A stretch of DNA of 64,000 nucleotides from Mytilus californianus (GCF_021869535.1 NW_026262615.1:6696001-6760000); one strand, 5' to 3'. Numbered from the stretch's first letter, positions 15,073 to 48,499 are shown. Notes: generated by a model not told the origin, from the letters alone. Made by a program: numbers and translations.

Positions 15073-15114
15073 CATCACTGAAGAGACATTAATTGTCGAA
15101 ATCCGGATATGGTG
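15073..15114 (+). ncRNA. Minimal type I hammerhead ribozyme (second direct repeat)
   Basis: Identical to 12597-12638 over the 42-nt motif. Confidence 0.8.
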
Positions 15115-15148
15115 TACAAGTTTGTGCACCTCATGTTTGCGGTATACT

Positions 15149-22499: not shown

Positions 22500-23170
22500 T
22501 AATATTAACTTCATTGACACAACAATAAACTGATGACAAAAAGATATGTCTCGCCTGTAGGCATAAAAGTCAGAAATAGACAATCTGATGGACAGTAACA
22601 TTGCTTATTATTTCAAAGTCATTTGACCATGATCTTGTGGGCAGGGCCTTTAAATGATCACTAACTTAGATGTACAGACAGTAATGTAACTATATAGACA
22701 ATATCATTGTCTATTGTAAGCAGTTCTTAGCAATCTAACTTCAGCAGAAAACTTAACATTGAAAATTCATAATTAATTCAAAGTCGCTGAACCATGACCT
22801 AAGGGCCAGGGCCTCAAAATAGTCGTCAAACAGATATGTACTGATAGTAATGCAACCTTATATTAAATATAATTGATCTATCACAAGTAGATCCTATCAA
22901 ACTATGTTAAGTAGAAAAGTTAACATTTAAAATTGTTAGTTCATTCAAAGTCGCAGAACCATGACCTAGGGACAGGACCTCAAAATGGCCGTCAAACTAA
23001 TATGTACTGATAGTAATGCAAGTTTGTATTAAATATCAATGATCTATCACAAGTAATTCCTTTCAAACTAACTTAGGCAGAAAACTTAACAATTGTTGAC
23101 GCCATCGTTGCCGTCGCCGGAAATGCAATCCCTATATTTCGCTTTCCGCGACTTTTATCACAGGCGAGAC
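22500..23170. repeat. Interspersed repeat with ~180-bp internal tandem units
   Basis: TTCAAAGTC...GACCATGA units at ~22615, 22780 and 22945; ends CAGGCGAGACAAAAA. Confidence 0.6.
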
Positions 23171-26010: not shown

Positions 26011-26036
26011 TTGCAGCATTTCTGGAGGAAATGTTA
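26011..26036 (-). CDS. Probable 26-bp micro-exon after TSP1
   Basis: CTTATTCAAG|TA ACA TTT CCT CCA GAA ATG CTG CAA|GTAAGA; phase 1 in (fits TSP1 exon), phase 0 out; (V)TFPPEMLQ. Supported by splice signals and frame only. Confidence 0.5.
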
Positions 26037-26209
26037 CTTGAATAAGTGATTTAAAGAAATATTATTGCCCTGACTGTTTATTGTTTTTGAAATGTTGAAA
26101 TTTTTGGAAACGCTAAGGTTTTTTGATTGCCTTAACCATATTTGGTACTTTACTTTTTTATTCCCTTTACCATGTATTTGATCTTAGCTCAAAACTGATT
26201 TCATTCAAA

Positions 26210-26251
26210 CGCTACAGATGAGTCTCACGTAGAAGAAACACGCGTATGGCG
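26210..26251 (+). ncRNA. Degenerate hammerhead motif in an intron of the LRR gene (opposite strand to the gene)
   Basis: CGCTA CAGATGA GTCT CACGT AGAA GAAAC ACGCGTA TGGCG; core U>A change and stem II mismatch, probably inactive. Confidence 0.55.
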
Positions 26252-26415
26252 AAAAAGCCTTACATCTTCAATGTTTTTTTTTTATTCTGACTTCACAGAA
26301 TATAATGATAGATTTAACAGGTTTTAATAAGTTCTAAAAAGAAGTGTTCCGCTCTGGTTAACAATTAAATTATAAGGTAATGTTGATTTTAATCTGATGT
26401 ATTTAAAGAATTTAC

Positions 26416-26574
26416 CTGGACATTTTCCTAAGTTGCAAAGTGATGTTTCAGTTCTGGAACCAACACATTTCAGTCCATCGTCAGACGGTGGGGGATTGTC
26501 ACATGTTCTGGTTTTCACTATCACACCATCTCCACAAGTAACAGAACATGAGGAGTTGAACCAAAGGCTCCATC
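26416..26574 (-). CDS. Thrombospondin type-1 repeat (TSP1) exon
   Basis: GWSLWFNSSCSVTCGDGVIVKTRTCDNPPPSDDGLKCVGSRTETSLCNLGKCP carries the WSxW, CSVTCG, RxC and CP motifs; 159 bp, phase 1-1, pyrimidine tract before AG, GTAAAT donor. Confidence 0.93.
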
Positions 26575-27559
26575 CTTCATTTAAAAAAGATGAAAACAAG
26601 AAGTTATCAATCTAATACTGTTGCAAAAATATTGAACAATTTTTCACTATTAGCAGTCAGTTTGGTTTAATTTTGTCATCATAAATTGAAAACCTCAATT
26701 TTGCATAAGTCATTCCCACAAAACAATCATTTGACCTCATTTGAATACTCATGCATGCATCATACTCATAATTTTACCTTTAACTTATTTAGGAATTATT
26801 AAGTTCATTAGTGAAAGATATTGGTCTTAAGCTTCTTCCCTTGTTTAACCTTTTCTTTTCTAGCAATCAAAGTCAGACTGCAGTCACACCACATGAAGTT
26901 TTGTAAGTTGGAAATAGGTTTTTGCATGGTATCAATCAAAAACGACAGTTAGCGCCAATTTGGATAACTTGAATTTACCGGAATTGACCTTTTTATTATG
27001 ATCAGCAGTAGTTATCCAATTTTCATTAATTTCATGTAGTGTAAATGTAACCTTATAGGTATAAAAAAACTAATCCTATCTTTCCTATATATCAAACATG
27101 TAAGGTATACTATATAGAAAAAAACAAACTGTGTTATTCAGTTGTTTAAGATTGTGTCTGCTAAAAAATGTAAGTCAAAAGTTACTTAATTTGGTCAATT
27201 AAAATTGTCGGTAAAGAGAATGAGGCTCTAGTCAAAACTCCAACTTAGTGTCTTACTGTTTTTCTCACCATCACAAGTGTGACTTAATAAAAAAAACTAA
27301 AACCAATTTAGCAACCAAATTTACAAAATTAATGACATACAGATATGGAATAAAAAATGGACATGAGGTATGTATCGAGAATGTTAAATGTTCAGGCACT
27401 TTCACAACAAATCTGAAAAAAGAAATGGAAGCATGTCTAAGATATTTATTTTTATTTCAGATAGTTGCTACAGTGGTCAAATTGGAAATGAATAGATTGC
27501 ATATACACAAAATATGAGTAAATTTCATCATTTATTAAGAAATCTTTTTAACTGCTTAC

Positions 27560-27714
27560 CTGGAATTATGCAGCCTGTCATGTTAAAATTGCGAATATCT
27601 ATGGTGGTATTCAAACCAGTACATGTTCCTATGTAAACAAGGTTTGTTTGATTTGATGCCCATTCTTTAAAATCAATCATGCGGCAGCATATGAATTGGT
27701 TTCTGTTCATATTC
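27560..27714 (-). CDS. LRR C-terminal cap (LRRCT)-like exon
   Basis: TTTAAG|G AAT ATG AAC AGA AAC CAA TTC ATA TGC TGC... = NMNRNQFICCRMIDFKEWASNQTNLVYIGTCTGLNTTIDIRNFNMTGCIIP(G), resembling NPFxCxC...FxxW...C...C. 155 bp, phase 2 in and phase 1 out (CCAG|GTAAG), consistent with both neighbours. Confidence 0.85.
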
Positions 27715-28009
27715 CTTAAATATTAAATTAATGTAAGGTTAATTTCTATGTCATGTACATATCCATGTGACTTCTGCTTTTTCACACTATTGCGAAACAA
27801 TTTGAAATCTCAAGGGGAAGAAATATATATAAGATACGGCAACAACATGGAATTATAGAAACAACGACAAAGTATCATGTTGTTTCTACAGATATTGGCA
27901 AAAAGAGATATAAATCATCAAATCAAAATAGGTAGAGCTTTTAATTAAACATTAAGCAAGGCATTTTATTACGTAAGAGGAACAACTGTCATACAAAACA
28001 AATGCTTAC

Positions 28010-28090
28010 AACACAAATTATTATAATTATAATTCTGTTTTCGAGAACAGACCTTCTGGTAAATTTATTAAGAAGTTACCCTGAAAAGTT
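28010..28090 (-). pseudogene. Last LRR module, with in-frame stops
   Basis: TTATAG|A ACT TTT CAG GGT AAC TTC TTA ATA AAT TTA CCA GAA GGT CTG TTC TCG AAA ACA GAA TTA TAA...TT|GTAAGC (81 bp). Confidence 0.75.
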
Positions 28091-29221
28091 CTATAAGAAA
28101 ATCAATAGTCATGAATGAAAATCTGAATTAGAACACTGTTGCTAAAATTACCAAAAATTCCAAATGCCGTTCTCCGTGTATTCAAAAGATAAATATATTT
28201 TTCTTAGAACTGATATTGCTTGAACAGCAATATTTGATTATTGAACGACATTAAAAGTTAAATAAAGAAGTACAAATGAATTGTGCGTAAACAATAAAAT
28301 GATGGTAAACCTGCTGCGTTGTTTGCACACAAGAATATTTTGAAGAACATCAGTTATATATGTGCATGATTAGATATGCAATACAATCTACCATATGATA
28401 AGGTAAACATGATAAGTCGTAGATAAACTTAAGACACTAATACTCAAATTATCAAAAAAATATAACAAAAATACTGAACTACAAGGCAAGTTCAAAAAGG
28501 GGAAGTCCATAAAATCAGACAAAATCAAACGCTATCAAACAATGGAATAATTAAAAACAACTGCCATTTTCCTGACTTGGAAGACAATCATGTATCATGA
28601 TTGAGTAAGAATATATTCAATCAAGACAATGGTTCTTGAATTACGCAAGATTTCAAAGGCTTACCTTGAAATATAGAATGAGATTAGGAGTAAAATGAGT
28701 ATGTACATTATAGATATAATTAATATTGAAGTCAAATGTCACATTCGTGGTTTGAAATCACCACTTCAGTGTTGACAGGCTTGTGATACAGTAGATAAAT
28801 AAGTTAGACTACCCGGTATCCCTTAAATGTATAGACGAACATCAACTATATATGATCGTTATAGGAATATGATAAAATAAAGGCTAAGGTGATAGTCATC
28901 ACACTTACAAAAGTCGAAGCTTTGTGTTCGATGATAACAGACCAACTGGTAAACTTACTTCTATGTAACAACTTGTTTAATCAAGACAATAATACTCAAA
29001 TTACCAAAAGGAACTCTAGGAGAAATTTTGAAATATTGAATACAATTAAAAGTTAAATAAGCATGTAAGAAAGATATGTTTTAGATAATAAAATGTTGAT
29101 AAACCTTCTGAGCTATTGGCACAGAAGAATATTGAAGAACACATGGTACATATGAATGAGGTTAAAAATTCCATCAATAATAGATAAGTTTAAGTCTGAT
29201 ATGAATATAAATTACACTAAC

Positions 29222-29293
29222 AAATATCTAAGATTTGTGTTGTTAGAAATCAGACCTTCTGGTAAAGTTACTAACTTTTTTTCGTGTAAATAC
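29222..29293 (-). CDS. Intact array LRR exon (72 bp), conserved Asn replaced by Lys
   Basis: CTTCCAG acceptor, GTTAGT donor, YLHEKKLVTLPEGLISNNTNLRY(L). Confidence 0.75.
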
Positions 29294-30018
29294 CTGGAAG
29301 GAATTCAAATATCTTCATTTTGTAAGAACATGTTAAATTAAAACACCAATACCGAACTTATCAGAGGTTACCAAATTCGATCTTCTTGTATTCAAAAGAT
29401 ATATTTTTCTTGAAACTGACATTGTTGATGCATTTTTATAATCTTTAACTGCAACCTTTAAATAATGAGTGACATTTAAAATAAGATTAAGTATGCACAA
29501 TTTTAAGGAAGTTTGCGAACAAAATGAAATGAAGATAGACCTTCTGAGTTGTCGTCACACGAGTATATTGAGGAACATCAGTTATATATGTACGTGGTTA
29601 TATAAACAACACAATCTTTAATAAAATAAAGTCTGTGATAAACATTTTTCACAATTACAATTTTTTTAACTTGGTGTTTGATGATAACATTCTAACTGGT
29701 AAACTTTCCTTGTTGTCTTTGGCTACAATTTTTTTTATTAAAATCAAGCATCTTAATTATGTAAGAACATATTCAATCAAGACAATTATATTCAAATTAC
29801 CAAAAGGAGTTGTAAGATTAATTTTGAAATATTGAATAACATTAAAAGTTAAATAAGAATATAAAAAGGAAGTTTTCATAGACAATAGAATGGAGATAAA
29901 CCTGTTGAGCTATTGGCACACATGTATATCAAAACCACAGGGTACATATGAACAAGGCTGATAAATCTACACAATAATAAATAATTTTAAGTCTGATATA
30001 AATATCAATTGCACGTAC

Positions 30019-30089
30019 AAATATTGAAGATTTGCATTAATATTAATAGACCTTCTGGTCAACTTTCTAAATTGTTATTCAGTAAATAT
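30019..30089 (-). pseudogene. LRR pseudo-exon, 71 bp with in-frame TGA
   Basis: AG and GT intact, but TTA>TGA and a 1-nt deletion. Confidence 0.8.
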
Positions 30090-30404
30090 CTAACAGAAAA
30101 TCAATGATCATGAACATACTTAATAAACCTACTCATATTCAAATTGCCAAACATTTCAAAGGTCTATATTCTGTTATTGAATGGATCAAATATATTTGTC
30201 ATCCACCTGATGTTGTTGATATAATTTTAATTGCTTAAAAATTCAACATTTACTATTGACATAATTAAAATAGAGTGATGACAAAACTGCTCAGTTCTCG
30301 GCACATAAGTATATTGAAAAACATCAGATATGTGTGTACATGATTATCTATATAATATCATCTAAAATAAAATAAAGTCCGAGATGAGCATAGTTCATAC
30401 TTAC

Positions 30405-30476
30405 AATGTATTAAGATTCGTGTTCGACAAAAACAGATCTTTTGGTAAACTTTCTAACATGTTATTAGTTAAATCT
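30405..30476 (-). CDS. Intact array LRR exon (72 bp)
   Basis: CTTCCAG acceptor, GTAAGT donor, DLTNNMLESLPKDLFLSNTNLNT(L). Confidence 0.88.
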
Positions 30477-32185
30477 CTGGAAGAAAATCAAGTATCATGA
30501 TTATGTAAGAACAGGTTACATTAAAGCACTGATACTGAACTTACCAAAGATTACCAATTTGATCTCCTTGTATTCAATGAGTGTATACTGGTGATAAACC
30601 TGCTGAGCTATTGACTAACAAGTATATTTAAACCCCTTCATATAGGAACATCATAAAAAATAATCCAATATAATATTTTAATAATAAGTGTAAGTCTGGC
30701 ATATTGAAGATTGGTGTTCAACATGTTCAATGTTAACTGACCTTCTGGTAAACTTTCTAACTTGTTATTCATTAAATAACTAATAGAAAATCAAGGATCA
30801 TTAACACACCCAATTTATCTTCATATATTCAAACTACCAAACATTTTAAAGCTTGATCTTGAGTTATTCAACCGATCAAATATATTTGTCTTCCACCTGA
30901 TATGATAGATAAAAAGGAATTCTAAGATTAATTTTGAAATATTGAATAACATTAAAAGTTAAATTGGCATATAAAAAGGAAGTCTGACATATTGAAGATT
31001 GGTGTTCAACATGTTCAATGTTAAATGACCTTCTGGTAAAATTTCTAACTTGTTACTCATTAAATAATTAATAGAAAATCAATGATCATGAAAATCCTTA
31101 ATTTATCTTCTTATATTTTCATTACCATACATTTTAAAGGTTGATCGTAAGTTATTCAATCGATCAAATATATTTGTCGTCCACCTGATATGATAGATAA
31201 AATTGGTATTGCTTTAAAATTCAAACATAAAAAAATGAACTGAATTAAAAAAGAATGATGGCAAAACTGCTGAGTTCTCAACACACAAGTATTTTGAAGA
31301 AAATCAGATATGTGTACGTGATTAATTATACAATATAATCTAAAACACAATTAAGTCCTAAGATGATCACAATTCATACATACAATGTTTTAATTTTTGT
31401 GTTGTTAGAAAACATATGAACGAGGTTAAGAATTCCACACACTATTAAATAAGTTTAGGTCTGATATAAATATCAATTACACTTAAAATTCTATAGGATT
31501 CATGTTGAACAGAAACAAATCTTCTGGTAAAGTTACTAACTTGTTATGCCTTAAAAATCTGGAAGAAAATCAAATATCTTGATTGTGTAGGAACATGTAA
31601 AATAAAAACACTGATACTAAACTTACCAAAGAATACCAATTTGATCTCCTTGTATTCAATAAGTTTATAATTGTGATAAACCGACTGAGCTATTGGCACA
31701 CAAGTATATTAAAACCCCTTTATATAGGATAGGAACATGATCAACAATAATCCAATATAACCTTTTAATAAGTTTAAGTCTGACATATTGAAGATTTGTG
31801 TTCAACATGATCAATGTTAACTGATCTTCTGGGAAGTTTTCTAACTTGTTATTCAGTAAATATCTAATAGAAAATTGATGATCATGAACATAGTTACTTA
31901 ATTAACCTACTTATATTCAAATTACCAAACATTTCAAAGGTTGATCTTCAGTTATTCAATGGATCAAATATATGTGTCATCAACCTGATATTGTTGATGT
32001 GATTTTCATTGCTTTAAAAATCAACATTATTGAACGAAATTAAAATAGAATGATGACAAAACTACTGAGTTCTCGGCACACAAGTATATGTAAGAACATC
32101 AGATGTATGTGTACGTGATTAGATATACAATTTAAATAATATAATATGTAAGAAAAAGTCTGAGATGAGCATAAATCATACTTAC

Positions 32186-32257
32186 AATCTTTCAAGTTTT
32201 GTGTTGCTAGAAAACAGACCTTCAGGTAAAGTTATTAACTTGTTCTGGCGTAAAAAT
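32186..32257 (-). CDS. Intact array LRR exon (72 bp)
   Basis: CTTTCAG acceptor, GTAAGT donor, FLRQNKLITLPEGLFSSNTKLER(L). Confidence 0.88.
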
Positions 32258-34021
32258 CTGAAAGGAAGTCAACTATCTTGATTTTGTAAGAACATGTTAA
32301 ATTAAAACACCGATACCGAATTTACCAGAGATTACCAAATTCGATCCCAGTGTATTGAAAAGATGAAATATATTTTTCTTCAAACTGACATTGTTGATGC
32401 ATTTTAATAAGCTTCAACTGCAATCTTTAATCAATGAGTGACATTGAAACTAACATTAAGTATGCACAAAGGAAGTTTGCCAATAAAATGAAATTAAGTT
32501 AGACCTTCTGAGTTGTCAACAGACAAGTATATTGAGGAATATCAGTTATATATGTACGTGATTATATAAACAACACAATCTTTCATAAAATAAAGTCTGT
32601 GATAAACATTATTCACAATTACTTGTAACTTGGTGTTTGATAATAACAGACTACCTGGTAAACTTTCCTTGTTGTCTTTGGTTACAATTTTGGAGTATAA
32701 TCAAGCATCTTAATTATGTAAGAACATATTCAATCAAGACAATTATATTCAAATTACCAAAAGGAATTCTAAGATTAATTTTGAAATATTGAATAACATT
32801 AAAAGTTAAATTAGCATATAAAAAGGAAGTCTGACATATTGAAGATTGGTGTTCAACATGTTCAATGTTAAATGACCTTCTGGTAAACTTTCTAACTTGT
32901 TACTCATTAAATAATTAATAGAAAATCAATGATCATGAAAATGCTTAATTTATCGTCTTATATTTACATTACCATACATTTTAAAGGTTGATCTTAAGTT
33001 ATTCAATCGATCAAATATATTTGTCGTCCACCTGATATGATAGATAAAGTTTGTATTGCTTTAAAATTTAACATAAAAAATGAACTTAATTAAAAAAGAA
33101 TGATGGCAAAACTGCTGAGATCTCAACACACAAGTATTTTGAAGAAAATCAAATATGTGTACGTGATTAAATATACAATATAATCTATAACACAATTAAG
33201 TCCTAAGATGATCACAATTCATACATACAATGTTTTAATTTGTGTGTTGTTAGAAAACATATGAACGAGGTTAAAAATTCCACACACTATTAAATAAGTT
33301 TAGGTCTGATATAAATATCAATTACACTTAAAATTCTATAGGATTCATGTTGAACAGAAACAAATCTTCTGGTAAAGTTATTAACTTGTTATGCCTTAAA
33401 AATCTGGAAAAAAAATCAAATATCTTGATTGTGTAGGAACATGTTAAATCAAAACACTGATACTTAACTTACCAAAGATTACCAATTTGATCTCCCTGTA
33501 TTCAATAAGTTTATCATTGTGATAAACCTGCTGAGCTATTGGCATACAAGTATATTAAAACCCCTTTATATAGGAACATGATTTGCAATAATTTAATATA
33601 ATCTTTTAATAAGTTTAAGTCTGACATATTGAAGATTGTGTTCAACAAGTTCAATCTTAACTGACCTTTTGGGAATTTTTTTAACTTGTTATTAAGTAAA
33701 TATCTAATAGAAAATCAATGATCATGAATATACTTAATTAACCTACTTAAATTCAAATTACAAAACATTTCAAAGGTTGAACTTCAGTTGTTCAATGGAT
33801 CAAATGTAATTGTGATCAACCTGATATTGTTGATGTAATTTTCATTGCTCTAAAATTCAACATTATTTAAGGAAATTAAAATAGAATGATGACAAAACTA
33901 CTGAGTTATCGGCACACAAGTATATGTAAGAACAGCAGATGTGTGTCTACGTGATTAGATATACAATTTAAATAATATAATATGTAAGAAAAAGTCTGAG
34001 ATGAGCATAAATCATACTTAC

Positions 34022-34093
34022 AATGTTTTAAGTTTAGTGTTGTTAGAAAACAGACCTTCTGGTAAAGTTACCAACGCGTTATTCTCTAAATCT
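34022..34093 (-). CDS. Intact array LRR exon (72 bp)
   Basis: CTTCCAG acceptor, GTAAGT donor, DLENNALVTLPEGLFSNNTKLKT(L). Confidence 0.88.
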
Positions 34094-34720
34094 CTGGAAG
34101 ACAATCAATTATCATGATTATATAAGAACATGTTACATTAAAGCACTAATTCTGAACTTACTAAAGATTATCAATCTGATCTCCTTGTATTCAATAATTC
34201 TATAATAGTGATAGACCTGCAGAGCTATTGGCACACAAGTATATTAAAACCCCTTTATATAGGATAGGAACATGATTTGCAATAATTTAATATAATCTTT
34301 TAATAAGATTAAGTCTGACATATTGAAGATTTGTGTTCAACATGATCAATGTTAACTGATCTTCTGGGAAGTTTTCTAACTTGTTATTCAGTAAAAATCT
34401 AATAGAAAATTGATGATCATGAACATAGTTAATTAATTAACCTACTTATATTCAAATTACCAAACATTTCAAAGGTTGATCTTCAGTTATTCAATGGATC
34501 AAATATATGTGTCATCAACCTGATATTGTTGATGTGATTTTCATTGCCTTAAAAATCAACATTATTTAACGAAATTAAAATAGAATAATGACAAAACTAC
34601 TGAGTTCTCGGCACACAAGTATATGTAAGAACAGCAGATGTGTGTGTACGTGATTAGATATACAGTTCAAATAATATAATATGTAACTTAAAGTCTGAGA
34701 TGAGCATAAATCATACTTAC

Positions 34721-34792
34721 AATCTTTCAAGTTTTGTGTTGCTAGAAAACAGACCTTCAGGTAAAGGTCCTAACTTGTTTTCGTATAAATAT
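34721..34792 (-). CDS. Intact array LRR exon (72 bp)
   Basis: CTTTCAG acceptor, GTAAGT donor, YLYENKLGPLPEGLFSSNTKLER(L). Confidence 0.88.
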
Positions 34793-35775
34793 CTGAAAGG
34801 AAGTCAAATATCTTGATTTTGTAAGAACATGTTAAATTAAAACACCGATACCGAATTTACCAGAGATTACCAAATTCGATCTCCGTGTATTGAAAAGATG
34901 AAATATATTTTTCTTCAAACTGACATTGTTGATGCATTTTTATAAGCTTCAACTGGAATCTTTAAACAATGAGTGGCATTGAAACTAACATTAAGTATGC
35001 ACAAAGGAAGTTTGCCAATAAAATGAAATTAAGGTAGACCTTCTGAGTTGTCAACAGACAAGTATATTGAGGAATATCAGTTATATATGTACGTGATTAT
35101 ATAAACAACACAATCTTTCATAAATAAAGTCGTGATAAACATTATTCACAATTACAATTCTTGTAACTTGGTGTTTGATGATAACAGACTATCTGGTAAA
35201 CTTTCCTTGTTGTCTTTGTTTACAATTTTGGAGTAAAATCAAGCATCTAAATTATGTAAGAACATATTAAATCATGACAATTATATTCAAATTACCACAA
35301 GGAATTCTAAGATTAATTTTGAAATATTGAATAACATTAAAAGTTAAATTAGCATACAAAAAGGAAGTCTGACATATTGAAGATTTGTGTTCAACATGTT
35401 CAATGTTAACTAACCTTCTGGGATGTTTTCTAACTTGTTATTCAGTAAATATCTAATAGAAAATTGATGATCATGAACATAGTTACTTAATTAACCTACT
35501 TATATTCAAATTACCAAACATTTCAAAGGTTGATCTTCAGTTATTCAATGGATCAAATATATTTATCATCAACCTGATATTGTTGATGTGATTTTCATTG
35601 CTTTAAAAATCAACATTATTTAACGAAATTTAAAATAGAATAATGACAAAACTACTGAGTTCTCGGCACACAAGTATATGTAAGAACAGCAGATGTGTGT
35701 GTACGTGATTAGATATACAGTTCAAATAATATAATATGTAACTTAAAGTCTGAGATGAGCATAAATCATACTTAC

Positions 35776-35847
35776 AATGTTTCAAGTTTTGTGTTGCTAG
35801 AAAACAGACCTTCAGGTAAAGTTACTAACTTGTTTCCGTATAAATAT
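35776..35847 (-). CDS. Intact array LRR exon (72 bp)
   Basis: CTTTCAG acceptor, GTAAGT donor, YLYGNKLVTLPEGLFSSNTKLET(L). Confidence 0.88.
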
Positions 35848-36212
35848 CTGAAAGGAAGTCAAATATCTTGATTTTGTAAGAACATGTTAAATTAAAACAC
35901 CGATACCGAATTTACCAGAGATTACCAAATTCGATCTCTGTGTATTGAAAAGATGAAATATATTTTTCTTCAAACTGACATTGTTGATGCATTTTAATAA
36001 GCTTCAACTGCAATCTTTAAACAATGAGTGACATTGAAACTAACATTAAGTATGCACAAAGGAAGTTTGCCAATAAAATGAAATTAAGGTAGACCTTCTG
36101 AGTTGTCAACAGACAAGTATATTCAGGAATATCAGTTATATATGTACGTGATTATATAAACAACACAATCTTTCATAAAATAAAGTCTGTGATAAACATT
36201 ATTCACAATTAC

Positions 36213-36284
36213 AATTCTTGTAACTTGGTGTTTGATGATAACAGACTATCTGGTAAACTTTCCTTGTTGTCTTTGGTTACAATT
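36213..36284 (-). pseudogene. LRR pseudo-exon with dead acceptor (TCCAA); copies at 35156, ~32623 and 29659
   Basis: Open frame IVTKDNKESLPDSLLSSNTKLQE with GTAATT donor; acceptor AG mutated to AA. Confidence 0.78.
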
Positions 36285-36927
36285 TTGGAGTATAATCAAG
36301 CATCTTAATTATGTAAGAACATATTCAATCAAGACAATTATATTCAAATTATCAAAAGGAATTCTAAGATTAATTTTGAAATATTGAATAACATTAAAAG
36401 TTAAATTAGCATATAAAAAGGAAGTCTGACATATTGAAGATTGGTGTTCAACATGTTCAATGTTAAATGACCTTCTGGTAAACTTTCTAACTTGTTACTC
36501 ATTAAATAATTAATAGAAAATCAATGATCATGAAAATCCTTAATTTATCTTCTTATATTTACATTACCATACATTTTAAAGGTTGATCTTAAGTTATTCA
36601 ATCGATCAAATATATTTGTCGTCCACCTGATATGATAGATATAATTTGTATTGCTTTAAAATTCAACATAAAAAAATGAACTAAATTAAAAAAGAATGAT
36701 GGCAAAACTGCTGAGTTCTCAACACACAAGTATTTTGAAGAAAATCAGATATGTGTACGTGATTAAATATACAATATAATCTATAGCACAATTAAGTCCT
36801 AAGATGATCACAATTCATACATACAATGTTTTAATTTTTGTTTTGTTAGAAAACATATGAACGAGGTTAAGAATTCCACACACTATTAAATAAGTTTAGG
36901 TCTGATATAAATATCAATTACACTTAA

Positions 36928-36999
36928 AATTCTATAGGATTCATGTTGAACAGAAACAAATCTTCTGGTAAAGTTACTAACTTGTTATGCCTTAAAAAT
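36928..36999 (-). pseudogene. LRR pseudo-exon with dead donor (TTAAGT); same lesion at 33332-33403 and 31487-31558
   Basis: Intact AG and open frame FLRHNKLVTLPEDLFLFNMNPIE, but the donor reads TTAAGT instead of GTAAGT. Confidence 0.8.
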
Positions 37000-37626
37000 C
37001 TGGAAGAAAATCAAATATCTTGATTGTGTAGGAACATGTTAAATCAAAACACTGATACTAAACTTACCAAAGAATACCAATTTGATCTCCTTGTATTCAA
37101 TAAGTTTATAATTGTGATAAACCTGCTGAGCTATTGGCTCACAAGTATATTAAAACCCCTTTATATAGGATAGGAACATGATTAACAATAATCCAATATA
37201 ACCTTTTAATAAGTTTAAGTCTGACATATTGAAGATTTGTGTTCAACATGATCAATGTTAACTGATCTTCTGGGAAGTTTTCTAACTTGTTATTCAGTAA
37301 ATATCTAATAGAAAATTGATGATCATGAACATAGTTACTTAATTAACCTACTTATATTCAAATTACCAAACATTTCAAAGGTTGATCTTCAGTTATTCAA
37401 TGGATCAAATATATGTGTCATCAACCTGATATTGTTGATGTGATTTTCATTGCTTTAAAAATCAACATTATTGAACGAAATTGAAATAGAATGATGACAA
37501 AACTACTGAGTTCTCGGCACACAAGTATATGTAAGAACAGCAGATGTATGTGTACGTGATTAGATATACAATTTAAATAATATAATATGTAAGAAAAAGT
37601 CTGAGATGAGCATAAATCATACTTAC

Positions 37627-37698
37627 AATTTTTCAAGTTTTGTGTTGCTAGAAAAAAGACCTTCTGGTAAAGTTATTAACTTGTTATCCGATAAATTT
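37627..37698 (-). CDS. Intact array LRR exon (72 bp)
   Basis: TTCCAG acceptor, GTAAGT donor, open frame NLSDNKLITLPEGLFSSNTKLEK(L). Confidence 0.88.
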
Positions 37699-38399
37699 CT
37701 GGAAGGAAATCAAATATCTTGATTATAGATCATTTAACACTAAAACACTGATACTGAACTTACCAAAGATTACCTACTTTGAACTCCATGTGTTCAATAG
37801 ATAAATAAATTTTTCTTTAAACTGACATTGTTGATGCAATTGTTTAAGCTTTACTGCCACCTTTAAATGTGAGCGGCATTTAAAGTAAGATTAGTATGCA
37901 CAAAGGAAGTTCTTTGGATACCAGAATATGTCTAATATACTTAATTAACCTACTTATATTCATATTACCAAACATTTCAAAGGTCTATCTTCAGTTATTC
38001 AGTGGATCAAATATATTTGTCATCTATACTCATAATTTATTAGACATTAAAATCATTTGATTGAACACCATAATAAGATTGATCGACATAATAATGGACT
38101 GGACTACATGTCAACTGTAAAACAAAACGAAATCCCGTCCAACATCTGAAAAAGGGAATGTTTAAAACATGCCTCATTAAAACTACCATACTCCAATGTA
38201 AATTCAAAAATTCATAAGATGTTCCGAGGAACCTTGTGTCTCGCGATTGCTGCTGTCAGTCTAAAAGTGTAATGATGACATAAAAAGTGATAGCCTAGTC
38301 AATTTAGCTCTAATATTACTCAACCTGCAATTAATTGCAACACAAGATTTGTTTAAGTGTAAATTAGAACATAGACTTGTACTAAAAACATATAATAAA

Positions 38400-39060
38400 A
38401 ATCTACATTATCATATTTTGAGGAAAAGGTTATTTTGGTGTGAAATATATGGTTTTTAGAGAACAAAAATACGGAAAACTGGAAAAAATTAAAAACAGTT
38501 ATTTATGGTTACATTTTGAGACTTATAGCTTGGTGAAGAAGATAGGACACTTTATTTTTTTAGTGTATTATGTAGCCCTTTATTTATCATTGTTCGTATT
38601 AAAGTAATTTTGAGGTGAAATGCGTGATTTAGAGAAAAAACGCTGAAAACTGAAAATGATGAAAATCTCAGTTGTTAATGGTTAAAATGTGTGAAATGTG
38701 ATCTTCAAAGACAGAACATACTATTTTATGCTTATTATGTGAAGTCCAATAGTTATTTATATTAATATTTGGGTAAATTTGACTGAAATTTATGTTTTTA
38801 GAGAGAAAAACCTCGAAAACTGAAAAAAAAGCTCGGTTATTGTTGTTAAAACTTTTGATGTGGGATCTTTATAGAAAATACGACATATTATATATTCTGT
38901 TTATATTATGAAGAAATGTAGTTATTAGTATTTAAAAATGGTAATTCTTGGGTAAAATGTGGTTTTTAGAGAAAAATTAAAATAGGAAAAAAATATTCAT
39001 GGTTGAAAGTTTTGAAATATGATCTTAATAGAAGATAGAAAATATTAGCTTATGTTTATA
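38400..39060. repeat. Degenerate ~170-bp tandem repeat, about 4 copies
   Basis: TTTTAGAGA..AAAA..GAAAACTG anchors near 38455, 38628, 38797 and 38963. Confidence 0.6.
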
Positions 39061-39089
39061 CATGTAACGTCACGGTACTCAAATTGCAC

Positions 39090-39694
39090 TGAGTACCCAA
39101 ATTGCACCTAATTAGCAAAAATAGTAGCGGAAGTCTTACAATGTTTTGTTAAGAGATTAAACAATTGGTATATTTATGATTTGACATTATGCACATCTTT
39201 CAATATAGCTAAATATGTTCAAATATACACAATACGTTCACTTTCACAGTATATTATCAACAGATGAAGCATCCACTGGAAAACCTTATTCTACGGAAAC
39301 TTTGCCATGCGGCATCCACAAAAAGTCAATTTTCAAAAATGAGTCATTTAAACTATGTAACAGGCATCCATTTCTATAAAAAAATTAATAGTAAGCAAGG
39401 AATGTTGTCAAATTGTTCCAGATTAAACTAAAAACCAGTTATTTGATTTTACGGAATGATATGAATTTTAACATGGATGCAATTTGGGTACTTCTCAGAA
39501 CATAATCCTGGATCGTTTGGAGGTTGGTTCAAACCCATTTTTATGATTAAAAATGAATTTAAAACTAAATTGGTCGAACTATATAATAAATAAGAATACA
39601 TGCCCTAAAAATAAACACAGAAAGGACACTTTTGACTGAATCATATATAAACGTAGGTTAAAAAACTGTCAAAATAGGTGCAATCTGGATACCC
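39090..39694. mobile_element. Probable MITE (TIR core GTACCCAAATTGCACC)
   Basis: GTACCCAAATTGCACC near 39093 and GGTGCAATCTGGATAC near 39678. Confidence 0.4.
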
Positions 39695-42600
39695 TCACAT
39701 TATATGTATTCTTGTAGTTATCAATAACAATAGTGATATAATTTTTGTGTGAAGTATTTTGTTTTCGGAATAAATTACAAAAAAACAATTAAATTGCAAA
39801 TCTTGGTTATTTCTTAATTTGAATAGGGTAAAATAGAGAATGGAAAGCAGGAACGTGGCAAAGAGAAAACAACCCGACCAACAGCAGAACCCAGCCCAAG
39901 GCCACCACTGGGTCTTCATCGCAGCGAGAAAATATGGCACCCGGAGGCGAGCTTTAGTCGGCCCTTAAGAATAATGTATACTAGTTCAGCAAAATGGACG
40001 CCACACTAAATTCCACAACATTCAAATCAACCAAAATTATAAAAAAAAAAACACACAACACTAACAATTGGCTAGAATTTCCTGACTTTGGACAAACGCA
40101 AAAATACGGCAGGGTTAAACATGTTTCGCGAGATCTCAACTCTCCCTCTATACCTCTAACAATGTGGAATAAACAAAAACACAGCAGTACGCGCAGTAAA
40201 ACCAAGATAAAAAGAAGTAGGTTTTGTTGAAGTTTGGACATTTTATCTCATGTTTCTGTGATAAATTTATAGTAATTTTGTAGGTATAATAAACAAAAAA
40301 ATGTTTAATTGTGGTTCAAAAATTACTTAAAATTAGTTGATTTTTGTCATAATAATTGCTGAAAGAGTTATTTCACTAGTGTCCTTGCTTCACAATTGAC
40401 TGTTGTCCTTTTGTTTTGTATTTTTTCATTAGCTACTTTTACAACATTTGAATTACTAGACGAGTGACATTAACCATAAAATTTTATTTTTAATGCATCC
40501 ACTTAACATACGGCTAAATCATATACCATTCGAAAACACATCATCTGCACAAACCTTTTTTGCCCGGTCGTCAAAAATTCGTATGGTGTAGTTTCTGTCA
40601 AATCGCAACGAAAGGTCAAGTACGGACAACTTCTAATTTTACAAGAAGTCAGCATGTTTTGCATATTCTGTCTTCTGAATAATGATATTTTGTATGTACA
40701 TATGGAAATCTGTTAGAACAGATGTTAATAGTAACTTATCAAAAGCACTTTGAAAAATTCATGTCGGATTTTTAATAAATAGCGCTGTTTTCCAGAAATT
40801 CCATTGAAAATGACAAAAATGCATGAAAATCAAATTTTATGTCTGTGATTCAACTATTATTTACCATAAAACTAAATAACATATTTCATTTAGTGCTAAG
40901 GGTGTTTTTGACATCATTAAATTACTGCAATTACGCTTCTTGTTAATTAAACAGCCAATTATAACAACCGTGCAGTTGCCCAAATATCGCCATCTGCAAG
41001 AAAATAGCTTCTTTAGCTGTTCTTTGTTATAACAATTTGTATGTAGTCGATATTATGTTGAAAAACACAAATTTTAAAACTGCAAAAATGTTAAAGGATA
41101 GAATACACAGAAAATTCGTGCATTTAGGGAAAAGTTTGGGAGCGAAACTTTGATAATTCAATATTTCAATATGTGTATGTTTTCTTGGTTGATTATACTG
41201 CATCTTGCATTGAATGAGGAAGCGAAAACTATTATAAGCTAGCCACTGAAATGGTCTTCATGCCAGGCCAATATATTTAATCCTATCCAGCTACGTAATC
41301 TCTTGTAAATACATTGAGACCCTCGCAATTATATTTACTTACATTAATTTTTGAATTGGGAAATCTAGCAATTCGCAATAACAATACATACATTTCCATT
41401 AATCAAATTTACTCCCTGAATAGTTTACACATAAATACATTTTAATATAAAGATGATTGATTGATTGTTGGTGTTTGACGCAATTTTCGGTTTAGAACTT
41501 TTGGCTTCTAAAGTATTTTGAGGCGATCAGTTTTCAATGGTTTAGGCCCATGGAATGCCCATGGAATGCCCAAGGAACCACCAACCTTCGGAAGGAAAAC
41601 TGCCAATCCCCATCAACAATACATTAGTTATAGCTATTAGTATCAAGGACGAAGTTACTGTGTAGGTGTCACAACACAAATGTACCAATCAGCATTGATC
41701 ACCTTTTGTAAAAGTAGGCAACCTCTAACCAAACACAGTAGTGTTAATGTTGATGTTTACTTCAGCTAAATGTTACAAGTAAAGTTTTCTTAATAGAAAC
41801 AAAAATATAAATGCATTTGAACCACTTTTATTTCAAATTTAATTGGCCATGATTTTGCATTACTATTTCAATGTAGGTTTGCCACATAATATTTTCATTT
41901 TAGGCATTTAAAAAAAAAGAGCATGATCTACTATTTAAGTAGATAATCTATTAAGCATTGGTTGATCATTGGCATATTAAAGATAGTACGTGTATATTAA
42001 AAATACATATGGTTAAAATGAAGTTATTTTATTCTAAGATATCTATACAATTGTGAAAAATGAAAAAAATTGTGGTTGAATTTATCCAGTTTTTTTAATC
42101 GGTTTTATGTAATCTGATCTTAAATTATGTTCGTGAATATTTATTGTGCACTGAGCCCTCTGTTATTGATCTGACAGCGACTTTTTGCGATTTTCTCACT
42201 TTATTTTCATATTTTTCAGTTCAAGTTTCTAATGGTGCGAAGATCTCACAACAATAATAAGTGATTTAAGTTGACATGAAAAAAAAACCGTACAAAATGT
42301 TATGTATCAGTGTTAAAACATGGGTTTAAACAATCTGATTAAAATTTAGATCAATCACGACTCGCCTGCCCATATATCGTGTGATAAAAACAAAATCATA
42401 GAACTAAATTTTAATAAGATTAGGGTTAACTTAATGAGATAGCTTGAAAGCAGGTATGTTCTGGTAAATTTAAAGCGATTACCGTTTTTAGCGCTATTTG
42501 AATATGTCTATTATGAAACAAATCCCTTCACGTATAACCTCCATATGTGCACTTTGAACTTCCATAATTCTGCCAAGCAATGTCGAAGGAATATTGCTCT

Positions 42601-45269
42601 TTACAATTTTGAGAATAACATATGGATATGTGAATGGAAAGAACAAAAGAAAAAAAGGACATAAGGACAAGATGATTCCTACATTTCCGCTATATCATAT
42701 AAAGATAGATAGAGATGGAGAGAGAACTACGAGGTCTATCACAACTGTTTTCCAATCGTTTGATGTGTTTCAGCTTTTGGTTTTGATATGTGATAAGAGA
42801 CTTTCTGTTTTGAAATTTCACTTGGAGCTCGGTAATTCATGTTGTTTTACTAACTTATTTTTTGCATCAATATCTGAGTTTTAAGTTCTGTTGTCTTTTT
42901 TCGCTCAGCTTTGATTTATGGTTTTCTTTTCTTTGATTGAAAGAAGGGATAAAATAATATGAAGGCAGTCTCAAACCATGGTCGAAGAAAAACAGACGAC
43001 AACATGACCATGGCGAAAAAGTAAGACAGACAAGCAAATCTTCTCAAAACACTATACCGAATTGTATGAACAATACGTAAACCAGTACGGTGATTACAGT
43101 TGTTCATGAAGGTTATTTAATCTTAATCAATCTGAATTATTAATTTTCAGTCATATTTAATAAAACAACTAACAAAGTATATCATAATGGGTTAACATAA
43201 AAAAGAATTCGCCGAATTTGACATTGAAAATCGCATGGTACAGACATTTTTCTTTCGAACATTGAACGAGCATAATCTTCGTAACATGTCTTTTCACATC
43301 GGGAAACTAATTTTTACCAAATATACTTCTTTTATTCTTTAAAGTTCTTCCATAACCTTTTTTTAAATATGGTTGATCATCACCTGCCGATATTAGCAAT
43401 ATTATCTAGCAAAAAAAAAGCTAGATGATCCCCATTTGCAGATGGTGTTTTTTGGGGCAACTACCAAAGCTTCATTAGAAGGCTGCATCTGGACCTACAT
43501 CATATTAATTGCAGTTTAAAATGACGAAAAATTTCCTCGGTCCATAAACAATAAATCTATTCTATTTTTGACATACAAATATTCAAATGTCAGAAAACAT
43601 TAAGATTTTATTGCAATTTTATCATTTTTTGGAAGTTTTTTCAAGAAATGCCATTTTTTGTTAATATAGCGCAATCAACATTTAAGTTTGCACTTGATTT
43701 GAAATCATGGTAATTTGTTTTATAAGGTTTAGATCAATTTTAGGGAATAAAATGCCATACAAGTACCTGAAAATGGCATTTTGTGTAATTATAGCAAACA
43801 TTTGGAATGCTCGGTTTAGACCTTTGACCTTGGTTTAACGAAAATTGCACCGTACGAATTATTGACGACTGGGCAAAAATGAAAGTACAGATAATAAGCT
43901 TTCGAATGATGTGTAATATAGCCGTATGTTAGGTGGGTGCATTAAAGTCGTTAATTAAGCGTCTTTTTGAAAATTGTCACTCGCCTATACATAGTGTCAA
44001 AGTTAAAAACAGATCACGTGATTGTAGTTTTTTTTTTCTTTATCGGTTGCTAATTTTATTAAGCAAGCTCTGTCAATATCAACGTTTAATTTCAGAAATA
44101 TACGGTTTTTAGATTTGGGAATATATTCTATTACACTGAATTAGCATGAAATATAGATCTTATATTGTTTAAAAGCAATTCCAAGGACAGCATTGTCAAT
44201 ACGAATATGAGATTGCCTCAAGTTCTTGAATTTAAAACGTAATGGTACCAAAGTAGTCCAATTTTAGATGTTGAATATGAGATGAACAGGGAAAATATTA
44301 TCTTACGAAATTCAGAGACAAAGATATGCATTCAGTGGTCAGTTGATCAAATACATCCACGCCATTTTGACTCTGGTTGATAGCTGCCCTGATGGAAAGC
44401 ATACCACACCTTCTCATTTCTATAGTGTGGGGGTTTTCGGACAAGAAAACATTAGGCAGTTCTGACAGTTTCCTTAGGAAAAAAATGTCAGAGTGGTACA
44501 AGGAATTTAATACAAATTTAATGTTGGAGTATTTAAACGAAAAAAAAAAAAAAAAAATAGTAAACATCTTCATTAAAGGGCATTAACTCTAATAAGGGGC
44601 CATCAGACGATCTTAACCATGCTGATTCATTTGTAGAACTAATCTTGCTGATCATTTTTGCTATATAAAGTTTCTCTCTATCTATTATAATTTTAAGATA
44701 ATGGGCAAAAATTTAAAAAGTTATTGACATTTTGGAAGTAAATGTACAATAAGTAAATTTCACAATTCCAAATGTTTCTGCCCTTGTCAAATTTTCTCTT
44801 TTTATAGTGGTTTTCAAGATAATAAACAAAACTTGCATTTTACACCTATGTTTTTTTTAGACATGTCGGCCATCTTGGTTGACAGGCAGCGTCATTGGCA
44901 ACATTTTCTAAACTAGATACCCTTTAAAATGAATTTGGCCAATTGTGGTTAAGTTTGGATCAGTAGTTTCAGAGAAGAAGTATTTAGTAAAAGCTAACGA
45001 CGACGGAGGACGGACGAAAATGTTGAGAATAATAGGCAAAAATAGAAAAAAAAATAAGTCAATTTTTCAGATTAATACGGAAAAGAAGAAATAAATATTT
45101 TCAACATTTTGCTCTGAATACTGTATTTTGGTCATAACAAAGCTTCTGTCCAAATTTCCCACAAATCTATGAAGCTTTCACGAAGTCATTGATGACTGAC
45201 GGTAATTACTTGTTAACTGTAAAACTAGAGGCTCGTCTGCATCTTCAGCAATAGCCACTTTTAAGTAAT

Positions 45270-46015
45270 AAACATCATTAAAAGGGAATAACTCTATTCA
45301 GAGATAACTAAAAATTTTCAGTCATGTTGACGTATTTGTAGATCTTATCCTACTGGTAATTTTCCTTTATAAAGTTTCTATTTATCTATTATAGTTTTCA
45401 AGATAATAGGCAAAAAATACTAAAACATGTTAAACATTATCATCAAAGGGCAATAAGTCCAATAACGAGTCGACTGCAGATTTCTGCCATGTTTTGGCTT
45501 ATTTGTGGATCTTGTCTATCTGATCGTTTTGTGTTATTTGAAGTTTCTGTCTATATAACTATTATAAATCGAGATAATAGGTAAAACAATTCTAAAATGG
45601 TAAATTCATCCTTTAAGGGCAATAACTCCTATAAGAAATCGTTTGACAGTTTTGACGTGAATGACCAATAGTTAGAGCTCAACATTCTGAACATTTTTGC
45701 TCATGTCAGATTTTCTCTATTTATAGCGGTTTTCCTTATAATAGGCAAAACTTGCATTTGACCCCTATGTTCTTTTTTTAGCCATGTCAGACATCTTGGT
45801 CGGCTGGTAGGGTCATCGGACGAAGTTTTAAACTACATACTCTAATAATGATTGTGGCTAATTTTGGTTAAATTTGGCCAAGTAGTTTCAGAGGACAGGA
45901 TTTTTGTAAAAGTTAACGAAGATGGACGACGACGATGACAGACGAAAAATGACGAGGACGGACATCAAACCCCAAGTGATGAGACAAGCTCACTTGGCCC
46001 TTCGACCAGGTGAGC
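45270..46015. repeat. Copy of the same interspersed repeat family
   Basis: Same unit motifs and tail GACGACGACG...AGTGATG...AGCTCACTTGGCCCTT...GGTGAGCTAAAA; paralogue at 54060-54730. Confidence 0.65.
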
Positions 46016-47187
46016 TAAAAAATAAGTTGATTTTATCCGTAAAATACGGAAAAATGAAAATAAACGTATTCAAAATTTTGCCCTGGATACTGTCCTTTGG
46101 TCATAAACAAGCTTCTGTCCACATTTCTTAAAATTCAATAAGGTTTGAAAAACTTATTGATGACTGAAAAACTTTCACTTCAGACTAAATTTGAAAGTAA
46201 ACTGTAAAAAAATAGTTCTATTTATCAGTAAAATACGAAAATATTTAAAAAATTTTGCTCTGGATACTTTATTTTGGTCATAAAGAAGCTTCTTTTCCAT
46301 TCCTAACATTCCATTAAGGTTTGACAAAGTTAATCATGTTATTGATGTCTAAAAAACATTAACCACAGACTTAACCTAAATGCTGACGCCGACGCCAATG
46401 ACGGAATCGAGGATCGCTATGTTTCAGTTTCGCACAAAATGTCGCAGGCTCGACAACAAGGGCAAGTTTATGCAACATGACATGTTCAAGCGATCTGACT
46501 ACTATATCAACTAACGGAACGTCAGGAAAATAATCTCACCTGACATGAACAATGCAAGTAAAATCTCATCTCATTTCCGATTATTGGATTGTCCTAATAT
46601 AGCAATATTCATTCAATAATTCATATGACATAATGATCCTTATTTATTGCAGTTTGAATATTGTTAAACAGAATAATAAGTAATTAATTGTTCATCTTGT
46701 CTCTACTAGAAATATTCCGACAAAAATAACAACAAAATTAAACAAGACGTAAATTGAAGATAAACAGAAAACACCATGGCAAAAAGAAAACACGAGGAAA
46801 ATACAAATGATCACAGATATCTAAGAGTATAATAAAACAAATCCCAAAACAGGGGGGATGATTTTTGACGACCTGAAATGTAAAGTAAGTTTCCCATTTA
46901 TAACACGGTAAATTTAAAAAGGGGAAAATTAATTAAACCTGACAAAAATCCAACGCTCAACACTATCAACCGACGAAATGAATTGAAAACAACTGTCTTT
47001 CCTCGATGAAAGAGAGTTCATAAGTCACGAACAACAAACTGGAGACAACGGACATTGTAAATATGATAACTACTTACATGAATGTGTAGTTATTTAAAAT
47101 CTGTCTATTATCACTTTTTAAAGTAATTTCTTACTGCATTATCATTACGGTAAAAACCTACTTCATTGCCCGTGTATCAATACTTAC

Positions 47188-47259
47188 AAGATTATAAGGG
47201 ATGTTAAACCAGAAAGCGCATTTGTTCTTACTGTTGTTAAGTTATTTCTACGAAGACTT
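47188..47259 (-). CDS. LRR receptor gene, first LRR exon (72 bp)
   Basis: CTTTCAG|A AGT CTT CGT AGA AAT AAC TTA...ATC TT|GTAAGT; SLRRNNLTTVRTNALSGLTSLII(L); phase 2-2, matching the previous exon. Confidence 0.9.
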
Positions 47260-48102
47260 CTGAAAGAATGAAAAATAAATGATCATAGGACTTCGTTCAA
47301 TATACATGATATAAGAACGATATTCCATATTCTGATATATAAAACCTACATCTCTTTAACATTCCGCAGGTCAAAACATTCTAAAGCATTTGCACAAAAA
47401 ATTTGGTAAATCTTAAAAAAAAAGTTGTGAATAAGGAATGAAGCTTTAGTGAAAATTAATCATAATTTAATGAATCATTTGGTGTGGACCAGTAAAAGGA
47501 TAGACCAACGATTGCATGAACTACATTTGAATGTATGAAATGAAAATACGAAGTCTATAGAGTAGACAATATTATGATAGACTATCATTTAATTGTTAAG
47601 TCAAGACAGTTTGCTGATATTTTACACAATTAGAACCATTTTGAAAAAGTGAAAGAAAACGCCTGACAGTTAACAACAATTAGTATTTAGATGCAAAGTA
47701 TTGGTAGTTCGTTAAATTTTGGGATATATTTTTAGTCGTGAATGAGGTACATAAAAAGCTTATAGGTATAGATAGAAATCATCATCATTGATGAAGATCA
47801 TGTATACAATAGTGGCATGATAATAGTAATAAGTGCCCGTGGAATATTGGCAGGTCGATAACTTAACGCGTTTGATATATCATAGATAATATCCTTTACC
47901 ACGTCCATTTCTTAAAATTTTCCTGCGCTATACACAAAACTGTTCCCAAACGAAAACCTGATTGTCTAATTAAAGCAGGAAAATTAAATCGAGAATTTCC
48001 GAAAACCAGCAAGTTCATTTAAAATCCAAACCTGGTCGGACAACTATATTTTCCATGCAAAGTCACGATTTGATTAAAACATATGTAATGAATAGTACTT
48101 AC

Positions 48103-48266
48103 AAAATTGTTGTAGTTGAAGAAATATCTGTATGCGGTATTTCATCAAAACTCCTTCCGGAACAATCAATTAGTGTACCAGTACATGAACAAGATGAAGG
48201 ACATCCATTAACTAAATCCCCTTTCAACAGGCGTATAAACAACATAACTGCAACTGACATCAACAT
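48103..48266 (-). CDS. LRR receptor gene, first coding exon: signal peptide plus LRR N-terminal cap (LRRNT)
   Basis: Manual translation MLMSVAVMLFIRLLKGDLVNG-CPSSCSCTGTLIDCSGRSFDEIPHTDISSTTTI(L): hydrophobic leader then the CPxxCxC...xDCSxxxxxxIP LRRNT pattern. Ends TT|GTAAGT (phase 2). Upstream acceptor TATTACAG at 48309-48308 gives 41 nt of 5'UTR in this exon. Confidence 0.92.
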
Positions 48267-48499
48267 TTTATTAGATGTGTTCGTTTTGCTCGTTTACCTT
48301 GATATATCTGTAATATACAAAAAAAAAATAATGTCAAATAATATAGCCTATTGCCAGAGAGTCATTTATTTTTTTAATAAACAATCATGAATTTTCAAGA
48401 TAAGACAAAATGTAAGAAATAGAGAGAAATTACCATTTCAAAAATTTTCCTTTCCTTAATTACACTCTATCAGATATGTGTCTCTTTCTTTTATGATAT

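Follow-up and report, generated by a model that had tools for sequence, protein, structure and literature searches.

A probable Mytilus californianus gene for a secreted LRR-TSP1 protein, with one repeat per exon and an intragenic array of live and dead LRR exons

The variable lymphocyte receptors (VLRs) of lampreys and hagfish are leucine-rich repeat (LRR) proteins with the order signal peptide-LRRNT-LRR1-LRRV(n)-LRRVe-CP-LRRCT-stalk and a glycosylphosphatidylinositol (GPI) or transmembrane anchor. Their germline gene is incomplete: LRRNT and LRRCT parts are split by non-coding DNA, no LRRV modules are in place, and a large flanking library holds partial LRR cassettes in both orientations and without splice sites. 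Assembly is somatic, by copy choice in lymphocyte-like cells with deaminases of the AID/APOBEC family. In plants, the LRRs of NLRs and receptor-like proteins (RLPs) undergo birth-and-death evolution, with positive selection on the xxLxLxx residues. Mussels tolerate heavy microbial exposure, and their innate immune gene families are expanded and variable. Here we describe a minus-strand LRR gene in a 64,000-nucleotide stretch of Mytilus californianus DNA (GCF_021869535.1 NW_026262615.1:6696001-6760000; hereafter the window), which is AT-rich (~27-37% G+C) and gap-free. The initial annotation of this DNA had taken the locus for a VLR-like receptor gene diversified through a cassette array. We read it with good confidence as a complete, ordinarily spliced Mytilus gene for a secreted LRR and thrombospondin type 1 (TSP1) protein of ~378 amino acids (aa). 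The predicted product probably comprises a signal peptide, LRRNT, eight 24-residue LRRs, a four-Cys C-terminal cap (C-cap), one TSP1 domain and a short hydrophilic tail.

The gene has 12 exons, including a terminal exon placed by homology, with canonical AG/GT splice sites and mutually consistent phases. Its parts are as follows, all on the minus strand.

48103..48266, minus: exon 1, with ATG, hydrophobic leader read as a signal peptide, four-Cys LRRNT (CPSSCSC) and start of LRR1; exits in phase 2
47188..47259, minus: LRR1 exon, 72 nt, phase 2-2, of a distinct sequence type
28024..37713, minus: LRR-exon array of 29 co-oriented modules, 7 live and 22 dead, over 9.7 kb, in higher-order units of ~0.7, 1.05 and 1.85 kb
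37627..37698, minus: live LRR exon 2, 72 nt, cag|...|gtaagt
35776..35847, minus: live LRR exon 3, 72 nt
34721..34792, minus: live LRR exon 4, 72 nt
34022..34093, minus: live LRR exon 5, 72 nt; 5' patch nearest a dead M. edulis module (L001:23024)
32186..32257, minus: live LRR exon 6, 72 nt; 5' patch nearest dead C modules
30405..30476, minus: live LRR exon 7, 72 nt, older and more divergent
29222..29293, minus: live LRR exon 8, 72 nt; donor gttagt, conserved Asn replaced by Lys
27560..27714, minus: C-cap exon, LxLxxNxFxCC..C..C; entered in phase 2, left in phase 1
26416..26574, minus: TSP1 exon, phase 1-1, Pfam TSP_1
25255..25343, minus: second candidate for the terminal exon, a homologue of the final exon in the M. 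edulis model CAG2235010.1; the acceptor used in M. edulis is not conserved here
24352..24434, minus: best-supported terminal exon, acceptor ttttacag, Ser/Asn/Lys-rich tail ending FPP and then a stop; possible extra donor after 24369

Joined from exon 1 through TSP1, 11 exons give an open frame of 351 aa. The boundaries previously proposed at 48103, 27560 and 26416 prove exact, with AG/GT sites and consistent phases, and the proposed layout (signal peptide, LRRNT, a distinct LRR1, seven 24-aa LRRs, cap, TSP1) is borne out. Each of the eight LRR exons opens on the third base of one codon and closes on the second base of another (phase 2-2); therefore, any one of them can be added or dropped in frame. 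The splice sites of the seven live array exons are strong and near-identical. Using Pfam, for a domain check of the kind proposed with the initial annotation, we found both LRRNT (26.7 bits, cut-off 25.8) and TSP_1 (PF00090; 7e-12, 45.8 bits, cut-off 21.6) above their cut-offs, TSP_1 being a domain type characterized by W-x-x-W, CSVTCG and six Cys. Single LRR exons gave weak LRR_8 matches, as expected because each exon encodes 23 residues. The C-cap exon is 71-78% identical to Mytilus family proteins. No further LRRNT, C-cap or TSP1 exon was found in the 64-kb window.

To place the gene in a family, we queried databases with the C-cap exon and with the M. edulis orthologue P0002 (CAG2235010.1). 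Against 1.84 billion representative proteins, the C-cap exon, which covers part of the homologue survey suggested earlier, gave 22 matches at E<=0.001; all 10 that were looked up by name are from Mytilus (M. edulis, M. galloprovincialis, M. californianus, M. trossulus and M. coruscus), in agreement with the earlier view of a bivalve gene. With full-length P0002, proteins combining LRRs and TSP1 occurred in Mytilus only, among the best 8000 candidates scored. Family members typically run signal peptide-LRRNT-LRRs-cap-TSP1 (one to four copies)-short basic tail, several database entries being partial. In an 18-member alignment, LRR_8 was detected in 18/18 and TSP_1 in 17/18, with Pfam LRRCT undetected, and three C-cap Cys and the TSP1 Trp278 are invariant. 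The entries carry automatic names: CAG2235010.1 is an 'LRRNT domain-containing protein', and the XP_ entries are called slit-like, platelet glycoprotein V-like, vasorin-like, carboxypeptidase N subunit 2-like or coadhesin-like. The literature searches found no paper describing a mollusc LRR-TSP1 family. The earlier remark that the gene was not recognised as a described system is thus borne out for the literature searched and not for databases, which already list the family under automatic names.

The family is not uniform, as some Mytilus members differ from the window gene in having 2-4 TSP1 repeats or a transmembrane segment. In P0045/P0047 (M. galloprovincialis LOC143064089) this segment follows TSP1, and the family therefore includes membrane-bound as well as secreted proteins.

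P0002 is 61% identical to the gene model over its full length (64% in exon 1). Its locus, L001, aligns collinearly with the window (72-82% nucleotide identity) in the flanks on either side and in every non-array exon, and P0002 is therefore the orthologue in another Mytilus species. The two genes share architecture and exon structure: L001 likewise has one LRR per exon in matching phases, and it is annotated as an ordinary spliced gene that includes all its live exons. They differ in the array, the window gene having 7 array LRRs and 29 modules in 9.7 kb, and L001 having 6 live and 7 dead modules (13 in all) over 15 kb. The denser array of the window results from higher-order amplification in its lineage. 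A C-type lectin gene adjoins the M. edulis locus; it was not found in the window, where the matches were to interspersed repeats only.

The 3' end was assigned by homology within the family. The exon at 24434-24352 is 92% identical to the tail of M. californianus P0040 and has a strong acceptor in the correct phase; with it, the model reaches 378 aa, including a 27-aa tail after TSP1. Inspection of the 378-aa model by eye revealed no transmembrane segment, stalk or hydrophobic anchor. This exon takes the place of an 11-nt micro-exon proposed at 26011, for which no homology support was obtained. An alternative 3' end, in which the TSP1 donor is read through as far as a stop at ~26327 (AATAAA ~40 nt beyond), is not favoured, because family proteins carry an ESC/ASC...K-rich tail, which is encoded at 24434. 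In M. edulis, the counterpart of the terminal exon (L001:34860-34930) appears frame-shifted relative to the family tail, which may be why the M. edulis model uses another last exon.

We then called LRR modules in the whole window on both strands, using an nhmmer profile built from the live exons (E<=0.01). The array as first described was recovered, with its counts of ~30 modules and ~23 defective corrected to 29 modules, 22 dead and 7 live. All 29 lie on the minus strand within the gene, on average ~330 bp apart, with none elsewhere in the window at that threshold and none inverted (best E 0.88 on the other strand). The dead modules are as follows.

37229..37304, minus: dead type B, 9-nt insertion, donor deletion, 79-nt frame-breaking exon from the nearest GT
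36928..36999, minus: dead type C, open reading frame (ORF) and acceptor preserved, donor TT instead of GT
36825..36897, minus: dead type D, no acceptor, in-frame stops
36434..36509, minus: dead type B', acceptor AA, type-B 3' defect
36213..36284, minus: dead type E, acceptor AA, open ORF, 72 nt
35377..35452, minus: dead type B, in-frame TAG
35156..35227, minus: dead type E, acceptor AA
34323..34398, minus: dead type B, type-B defect
33630..33703, minus: dead type B, additional 1-nt deletion
33332..33403, minus: dead type C, donor TT
33229..33300, minus: dead type D, no acceptor
32839..32914, minus: dead type B', acceptor AA
32617..32689, minus: dead type E, acceptor AA, 73 nt
31788..31863, minus: dead type B, type-B defect
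31487..31558, minus: dead type C, donor TT
31384..31456, minus: dead type D, no acceptor, stops
30992..31067, minus: dead type B', acceptor AA
30704..30779, minus: dead type B'', acceptor AG, type-B 3' defect
30019..30089, minus: dead B-like, in-frame TGA, 71 nt
29659..29729, minus: dead type E, acceptor AA, stops
28909..28978, minus: dead partial E-like, grouping with the dead M. edulis module L001:29581 (support 100/100)
28024..28090, minus: dead last module, acceptor AG, runs to a stop, no donor

These modules retain vestigial splice sites and fall into a few types. Type B with B' and other variants (10 copies) combines an insertion of 9 nt with a short deletion at the donor, so that the nearest GT yields a 79-nt, frame-breaking exon; three of the ten also have an AA acceptor and two contain stops. 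Type C (3 copies) keeps an open 72-nt frame and a good acceptor, with the donor GT changed to TT, and type D (3 copies) has no acceptor and has stops in frame. Four of the five E and E-like copies have an AA acceptor, two of these with an open frame, and the fifth is partial and has no acceptor. The single last module reads into a stop and has no donor. As the defects are common within a type, they are older than the amplification.

Self-BLAST revealed the higher-order organization, with copies 92-95% identical at offsets of 1049, 1835, 3603 and 5434, compared with 72-82% identity between species. Each unit consists of one live exon and one to five dead ones. A tree built from all modules places the dead M. 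edulis modules within window types B and E and unites the window live exons 37698, 35847, 34792, 34093 and 32257 in a lineage-specific clade. The dead modules are relic pseudo-exons co-amplified with the live exons and not a purpose-built donor library, because their defects are shared across higher-order copies and two dead types are dead in M. edulis too. Interspersed pseudo-exons also occur in a M. californianus paralogue (L002, JAKFGE010000013.1; 7277-12974), where live 72-nt exons alternate with modules that have an open frame and a cGG acceptor (8412, 10062), and they are therefore a family trait.

Because each LRR is a single 72-nt exon of phase 2-2, the repeat number changes in frame, by whole repeats, when the repetitive introns cross over unequally. 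These data indicate that the array was built in two stages. An old series of modules left several decayed copies, types B to E, and higher-order units of one live and one to five dead exons were then amplified recently in this lineage, carrying the dead modules along as relics.

To examine variation on the predicted binding face, we compared the five recently amplified live exons that make up the lineage-specific clade. In the six x codons of LxxLxLxxNxL, 12 of 18 nucleotide columns are variable, against 8/54 in the rest of the exon and 17/194 in the downstream intron (Fisher test, 7e-5 and 5e-8, respectively). Summed over pairs, the proportions of nonsynonymous (pN) and synonymous (pS) differences are 0.43 and 0.18 at the x codons (pN/pS ~2.4), and 0.046 and 0.148 at all other codons (pN/pS ~0.31), small counts from non-independent pairs in both cases. 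The scaffold codons of the live exons are under purifying selection. Divergence at the x codons probably reflects positive selection on the concave face, with conversion patches probably helping. This contrast, the classical combination of positive and purifying selection, argues that the live exons are expressed.

Two exons have unexpected affinities in part of their length. The 5' patch of exon 32257 shows 3-4 differences in 27 from dead C modules and 7/27 from the exons that share its flanks, and that of exon 34093 is closest to the dead M. edulis module L001:23024. The array is therefore mosaic, either by conversion or by unequal crossing-over with breakpoints in or near exons. For conversion from dead to live modules, the patches are suggestive only. 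The live exons are kept functional by purifying selection on scaffold codons, and their x positions diverge far faster than the neighbouring introns, probably through positive selection combined with short conversion patches.

The mussel gene shares with the VLRs the layout of signal peptide, LRRNT, LRR1, 24-residue LRRs and C-cap, and variability at the x positions of the concave beta strands. It differs in the germline features that define VLRs. Its germline gene is complete, with eight in-phase LRR exons flanked by AG/GT and the open 351-aa frame; its repeats read as spliced exons and not as somatically inserted cassettes; it has no flanking or inverted partial cassettes, all modules lying co-oriented inside the gene; and its cap is followed by TSP1 and the 27-aa tail, with no stalk or GPI region. 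The VLR-like cassette mechanism of the initial annotation finds no support in the germline features examined, whereas its idea of a diversified LRR receptor is upheld insofar as the binding face changes fast.

Sequence and structure comparisons place the VLRs among many similar proteins. In the sequence search with the M. edulis orthologue, SHOC2, IGFALS, LRRC15, VLR-A and LGR4/5 match about equally. Over residues ~21-270, a structure model of the orthologue has predicted local distance difference test (pLDDT) values mostly >85 (block means 83-98); its beta strands recur at 24-residue intervals, and a helix and hairpin form the C-cap (block-mean pLDDT 83-95). Foldseek with this model gave E values of 1e-15 to 1e-12 to LRRTM2, the Nogo receptor, VLRs and GPIb-alpha, LGR4 scoring alike. 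The resemblance to VLRs is generic. Equal or better matches are Nogo receptor, LRRTM2, GPIb-alpha, LGR4 and SHOC2, in line with the earlier view that the gene is probably not a VLR orthologue. The N-cap, 24-residue repeats, Cys-rich C-cap and modelled curved solenoid place the protein in the capped extracellular 'typical' LRR class (Nogo receptor, Slit, GPIb-alpha, LRRTM, VLR).

Plant NLR and RLP LRRs are a parallel in mode of evolution, with tandem duplication, unequal crossing-over, patchy conversion and pN > pS restricted to solvent-exposed beta-strand residues. There the process acts mainly between gene copies, whereas in the mussel it acts between exons of one gene and dead exons are kept in its introns. 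The product may be soluble and serve in recognition or as an opsonin-like factor, and the concave face of its LRRs would bind variable ligands; an immune role may be envisaged. The gene would then be a candidate diversified humoral recognition molecule, with one repeat per exon, rapid birth and death of exons and positive selection on the binding face, and a natural example of how a repeat protein evolves when exons are shuffled inside one gene. The more modest idea, that diversity arises at the exon level as exons are duplicated, die, receive conversion patches and are skipped, has partial support.

Several points weigh against this interpretation. The gene is predicted from genomic DNA, and no protein identical to the model was present in the databases searched. 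The exon annotated earlier as LRRCT is indeed a four-Cys C-cap exon, yet Pfam LRRCT was not detected in it, and the TSP1 part of the orthologue structure model is of low confidence. Two candidate terminal exons leave the 3' end uncertain. The pN/pS values come from five 23-codon exons, and the putative immune role is drawn from architecture and evolutionary pattern. Finally, the non-array exons of M. californianus and M. edulis differ with dS 0.20 and dN 0.17, a dN/dS of 0.87 that could reflect relaxed constraint.

As an alternative, the locus may provide a regulated splicing repertoire, with isoforms varying in LRR number or identity in a Dscam-lite or crab-VLR2-like manner. The uniform 72-nt, phase 2-2 LRR exons would allow this, and for two Mytilus paralogues RefSeq lists isoform pairs that are exactly one LRR exon apart: M. 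californianus P0043/P0044 (X1, X2) by skipping of the 72-nt exon at L002:9118, and M. galloprovincialis P0045/P0047 by 24 aa. Ten splice isoforms have been reported for VLR2 of the crab Eriocheir sinensis, with a claim of LRR-region diversity by alternative splicing (PMC10045472). This too is an invertebrate LRRNT-LRR-LRRCT gene; it differs in that its longest isoform has a transmembrane domain and no TSP1 and that no pseudo-exon array or higher-order repeat is described, and in that splicing of the mussel gene is predicted from DNA. LGR4/5/6 and other metazoan LRR genes, among which LGR4/5 are strong sequence matches, also have LRR exons in whole-repeat sizes that can be skipped in frame, and LGR5 delta-5 loses 216 bp, or 72 aa, by such skipping (PMC11678308). 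However, LGR4/5/6 are conserved single-copy receptors with no recent exon amplification, pseudo-exons or hypervariable x positions. For the mussel locus, the argument draws on annotation of paralogues, the uniformly strong splice sites favour constitutive inclusion, the M. edulis model takes in every live exon, and the annotated cases are single-exon skips with nothing combinatorial. Annotated orthologue and paralogues use all or all but one of their live exons in series, which argues against mutual exclusivity of the Dscam type. We therefore regard a regulated repertoire as doubtful, while occasional skipping of a single LRR exon may well give isoforms with fewer repeats at this locus.

Another possibility is that the intronic pseudo-exons form a standing reservoir that feeds short conversion tracts, by which ligand-facing codons in the live exons would be overwritten in the germline or conceivably somatically. 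If so, the pseudo-exon reservoir, copy-number change and exon skipping would together form an exon-level diversification system for a lineage-specific family of secreted LRR-TSP1 proteins. We consider such a reservoir unlikely.

It is more improbable still that this is a decaying, weakly constrained gene whose array is an exon-seeded satellite and whose x variation stems from relaxed constraint or a mutation hotspot. The dN/dS of the non-array exons would fit, as would the death of 22/29 modules and the one live exon with a weaker donor and no conserved Asn. On the other hand, all 11 exons through TSP1 are open with canonical sites in both species, no Cys is replaced between the species in the non-array exons, the three C-cap Cys and Trp278 are invariant in the family, and the contrast in pN/pS between scaffold and x codons is the opposite of uniform relaxation.

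VLR-like somatic assembly, in which gene conversion or copy choice in immune cells would transfer sequence from a donor library of dead and live modules to the expressed gene, finds some appeal in the protein order with its 24-residue repeats, the many non-expressible modules adjoining live ones and the C-like patch of exon 32257, but is extremely unlikely given a germline gene that is already complete and spliceable, intragenic co-oriented modules with vestigial splice sites and defects shared by descent (for two types also with M. edulis), an orthologue annotated as ordinarily spliced, and a generic similarity to VLRs. Nothing at this locus demonstrates that VLR somatic assembly has an invertebrate counterpart.

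Several repeats were observed in and around the gene. A short interspersed repeat is present at 45820-46030 and 54595-54738 of the window and at L001:42730-42900, one copy lying within the 9.5-kb intron that separates LRR1 from the array. The same long intron contains a diverged direct repeat (44724-46167; ~69% identity, ~500 bp, offset 968). On the plus strand, 12792-15466 of the window and L001:38643-40357 contain several ORFs of 110-140 aa that look reverse-transcriptase-like by eye; Pfam gave no match at E<=0.01 for the long plus-strand ORFs at 12920-14588 and 53378-53839. The stretch at 12792-15466 is probably a degraded retroelement. It is 78-82% conserved at the M. edulis locus, so the retroelement-like insertion is probably shared. 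Downstream of the gene are tandem repeats at 20003-20560 (166 bp), 21360-22116 (374 bp) and 22731-23091 (166 bp), the copies of the 374-bp unit being 97% identical.

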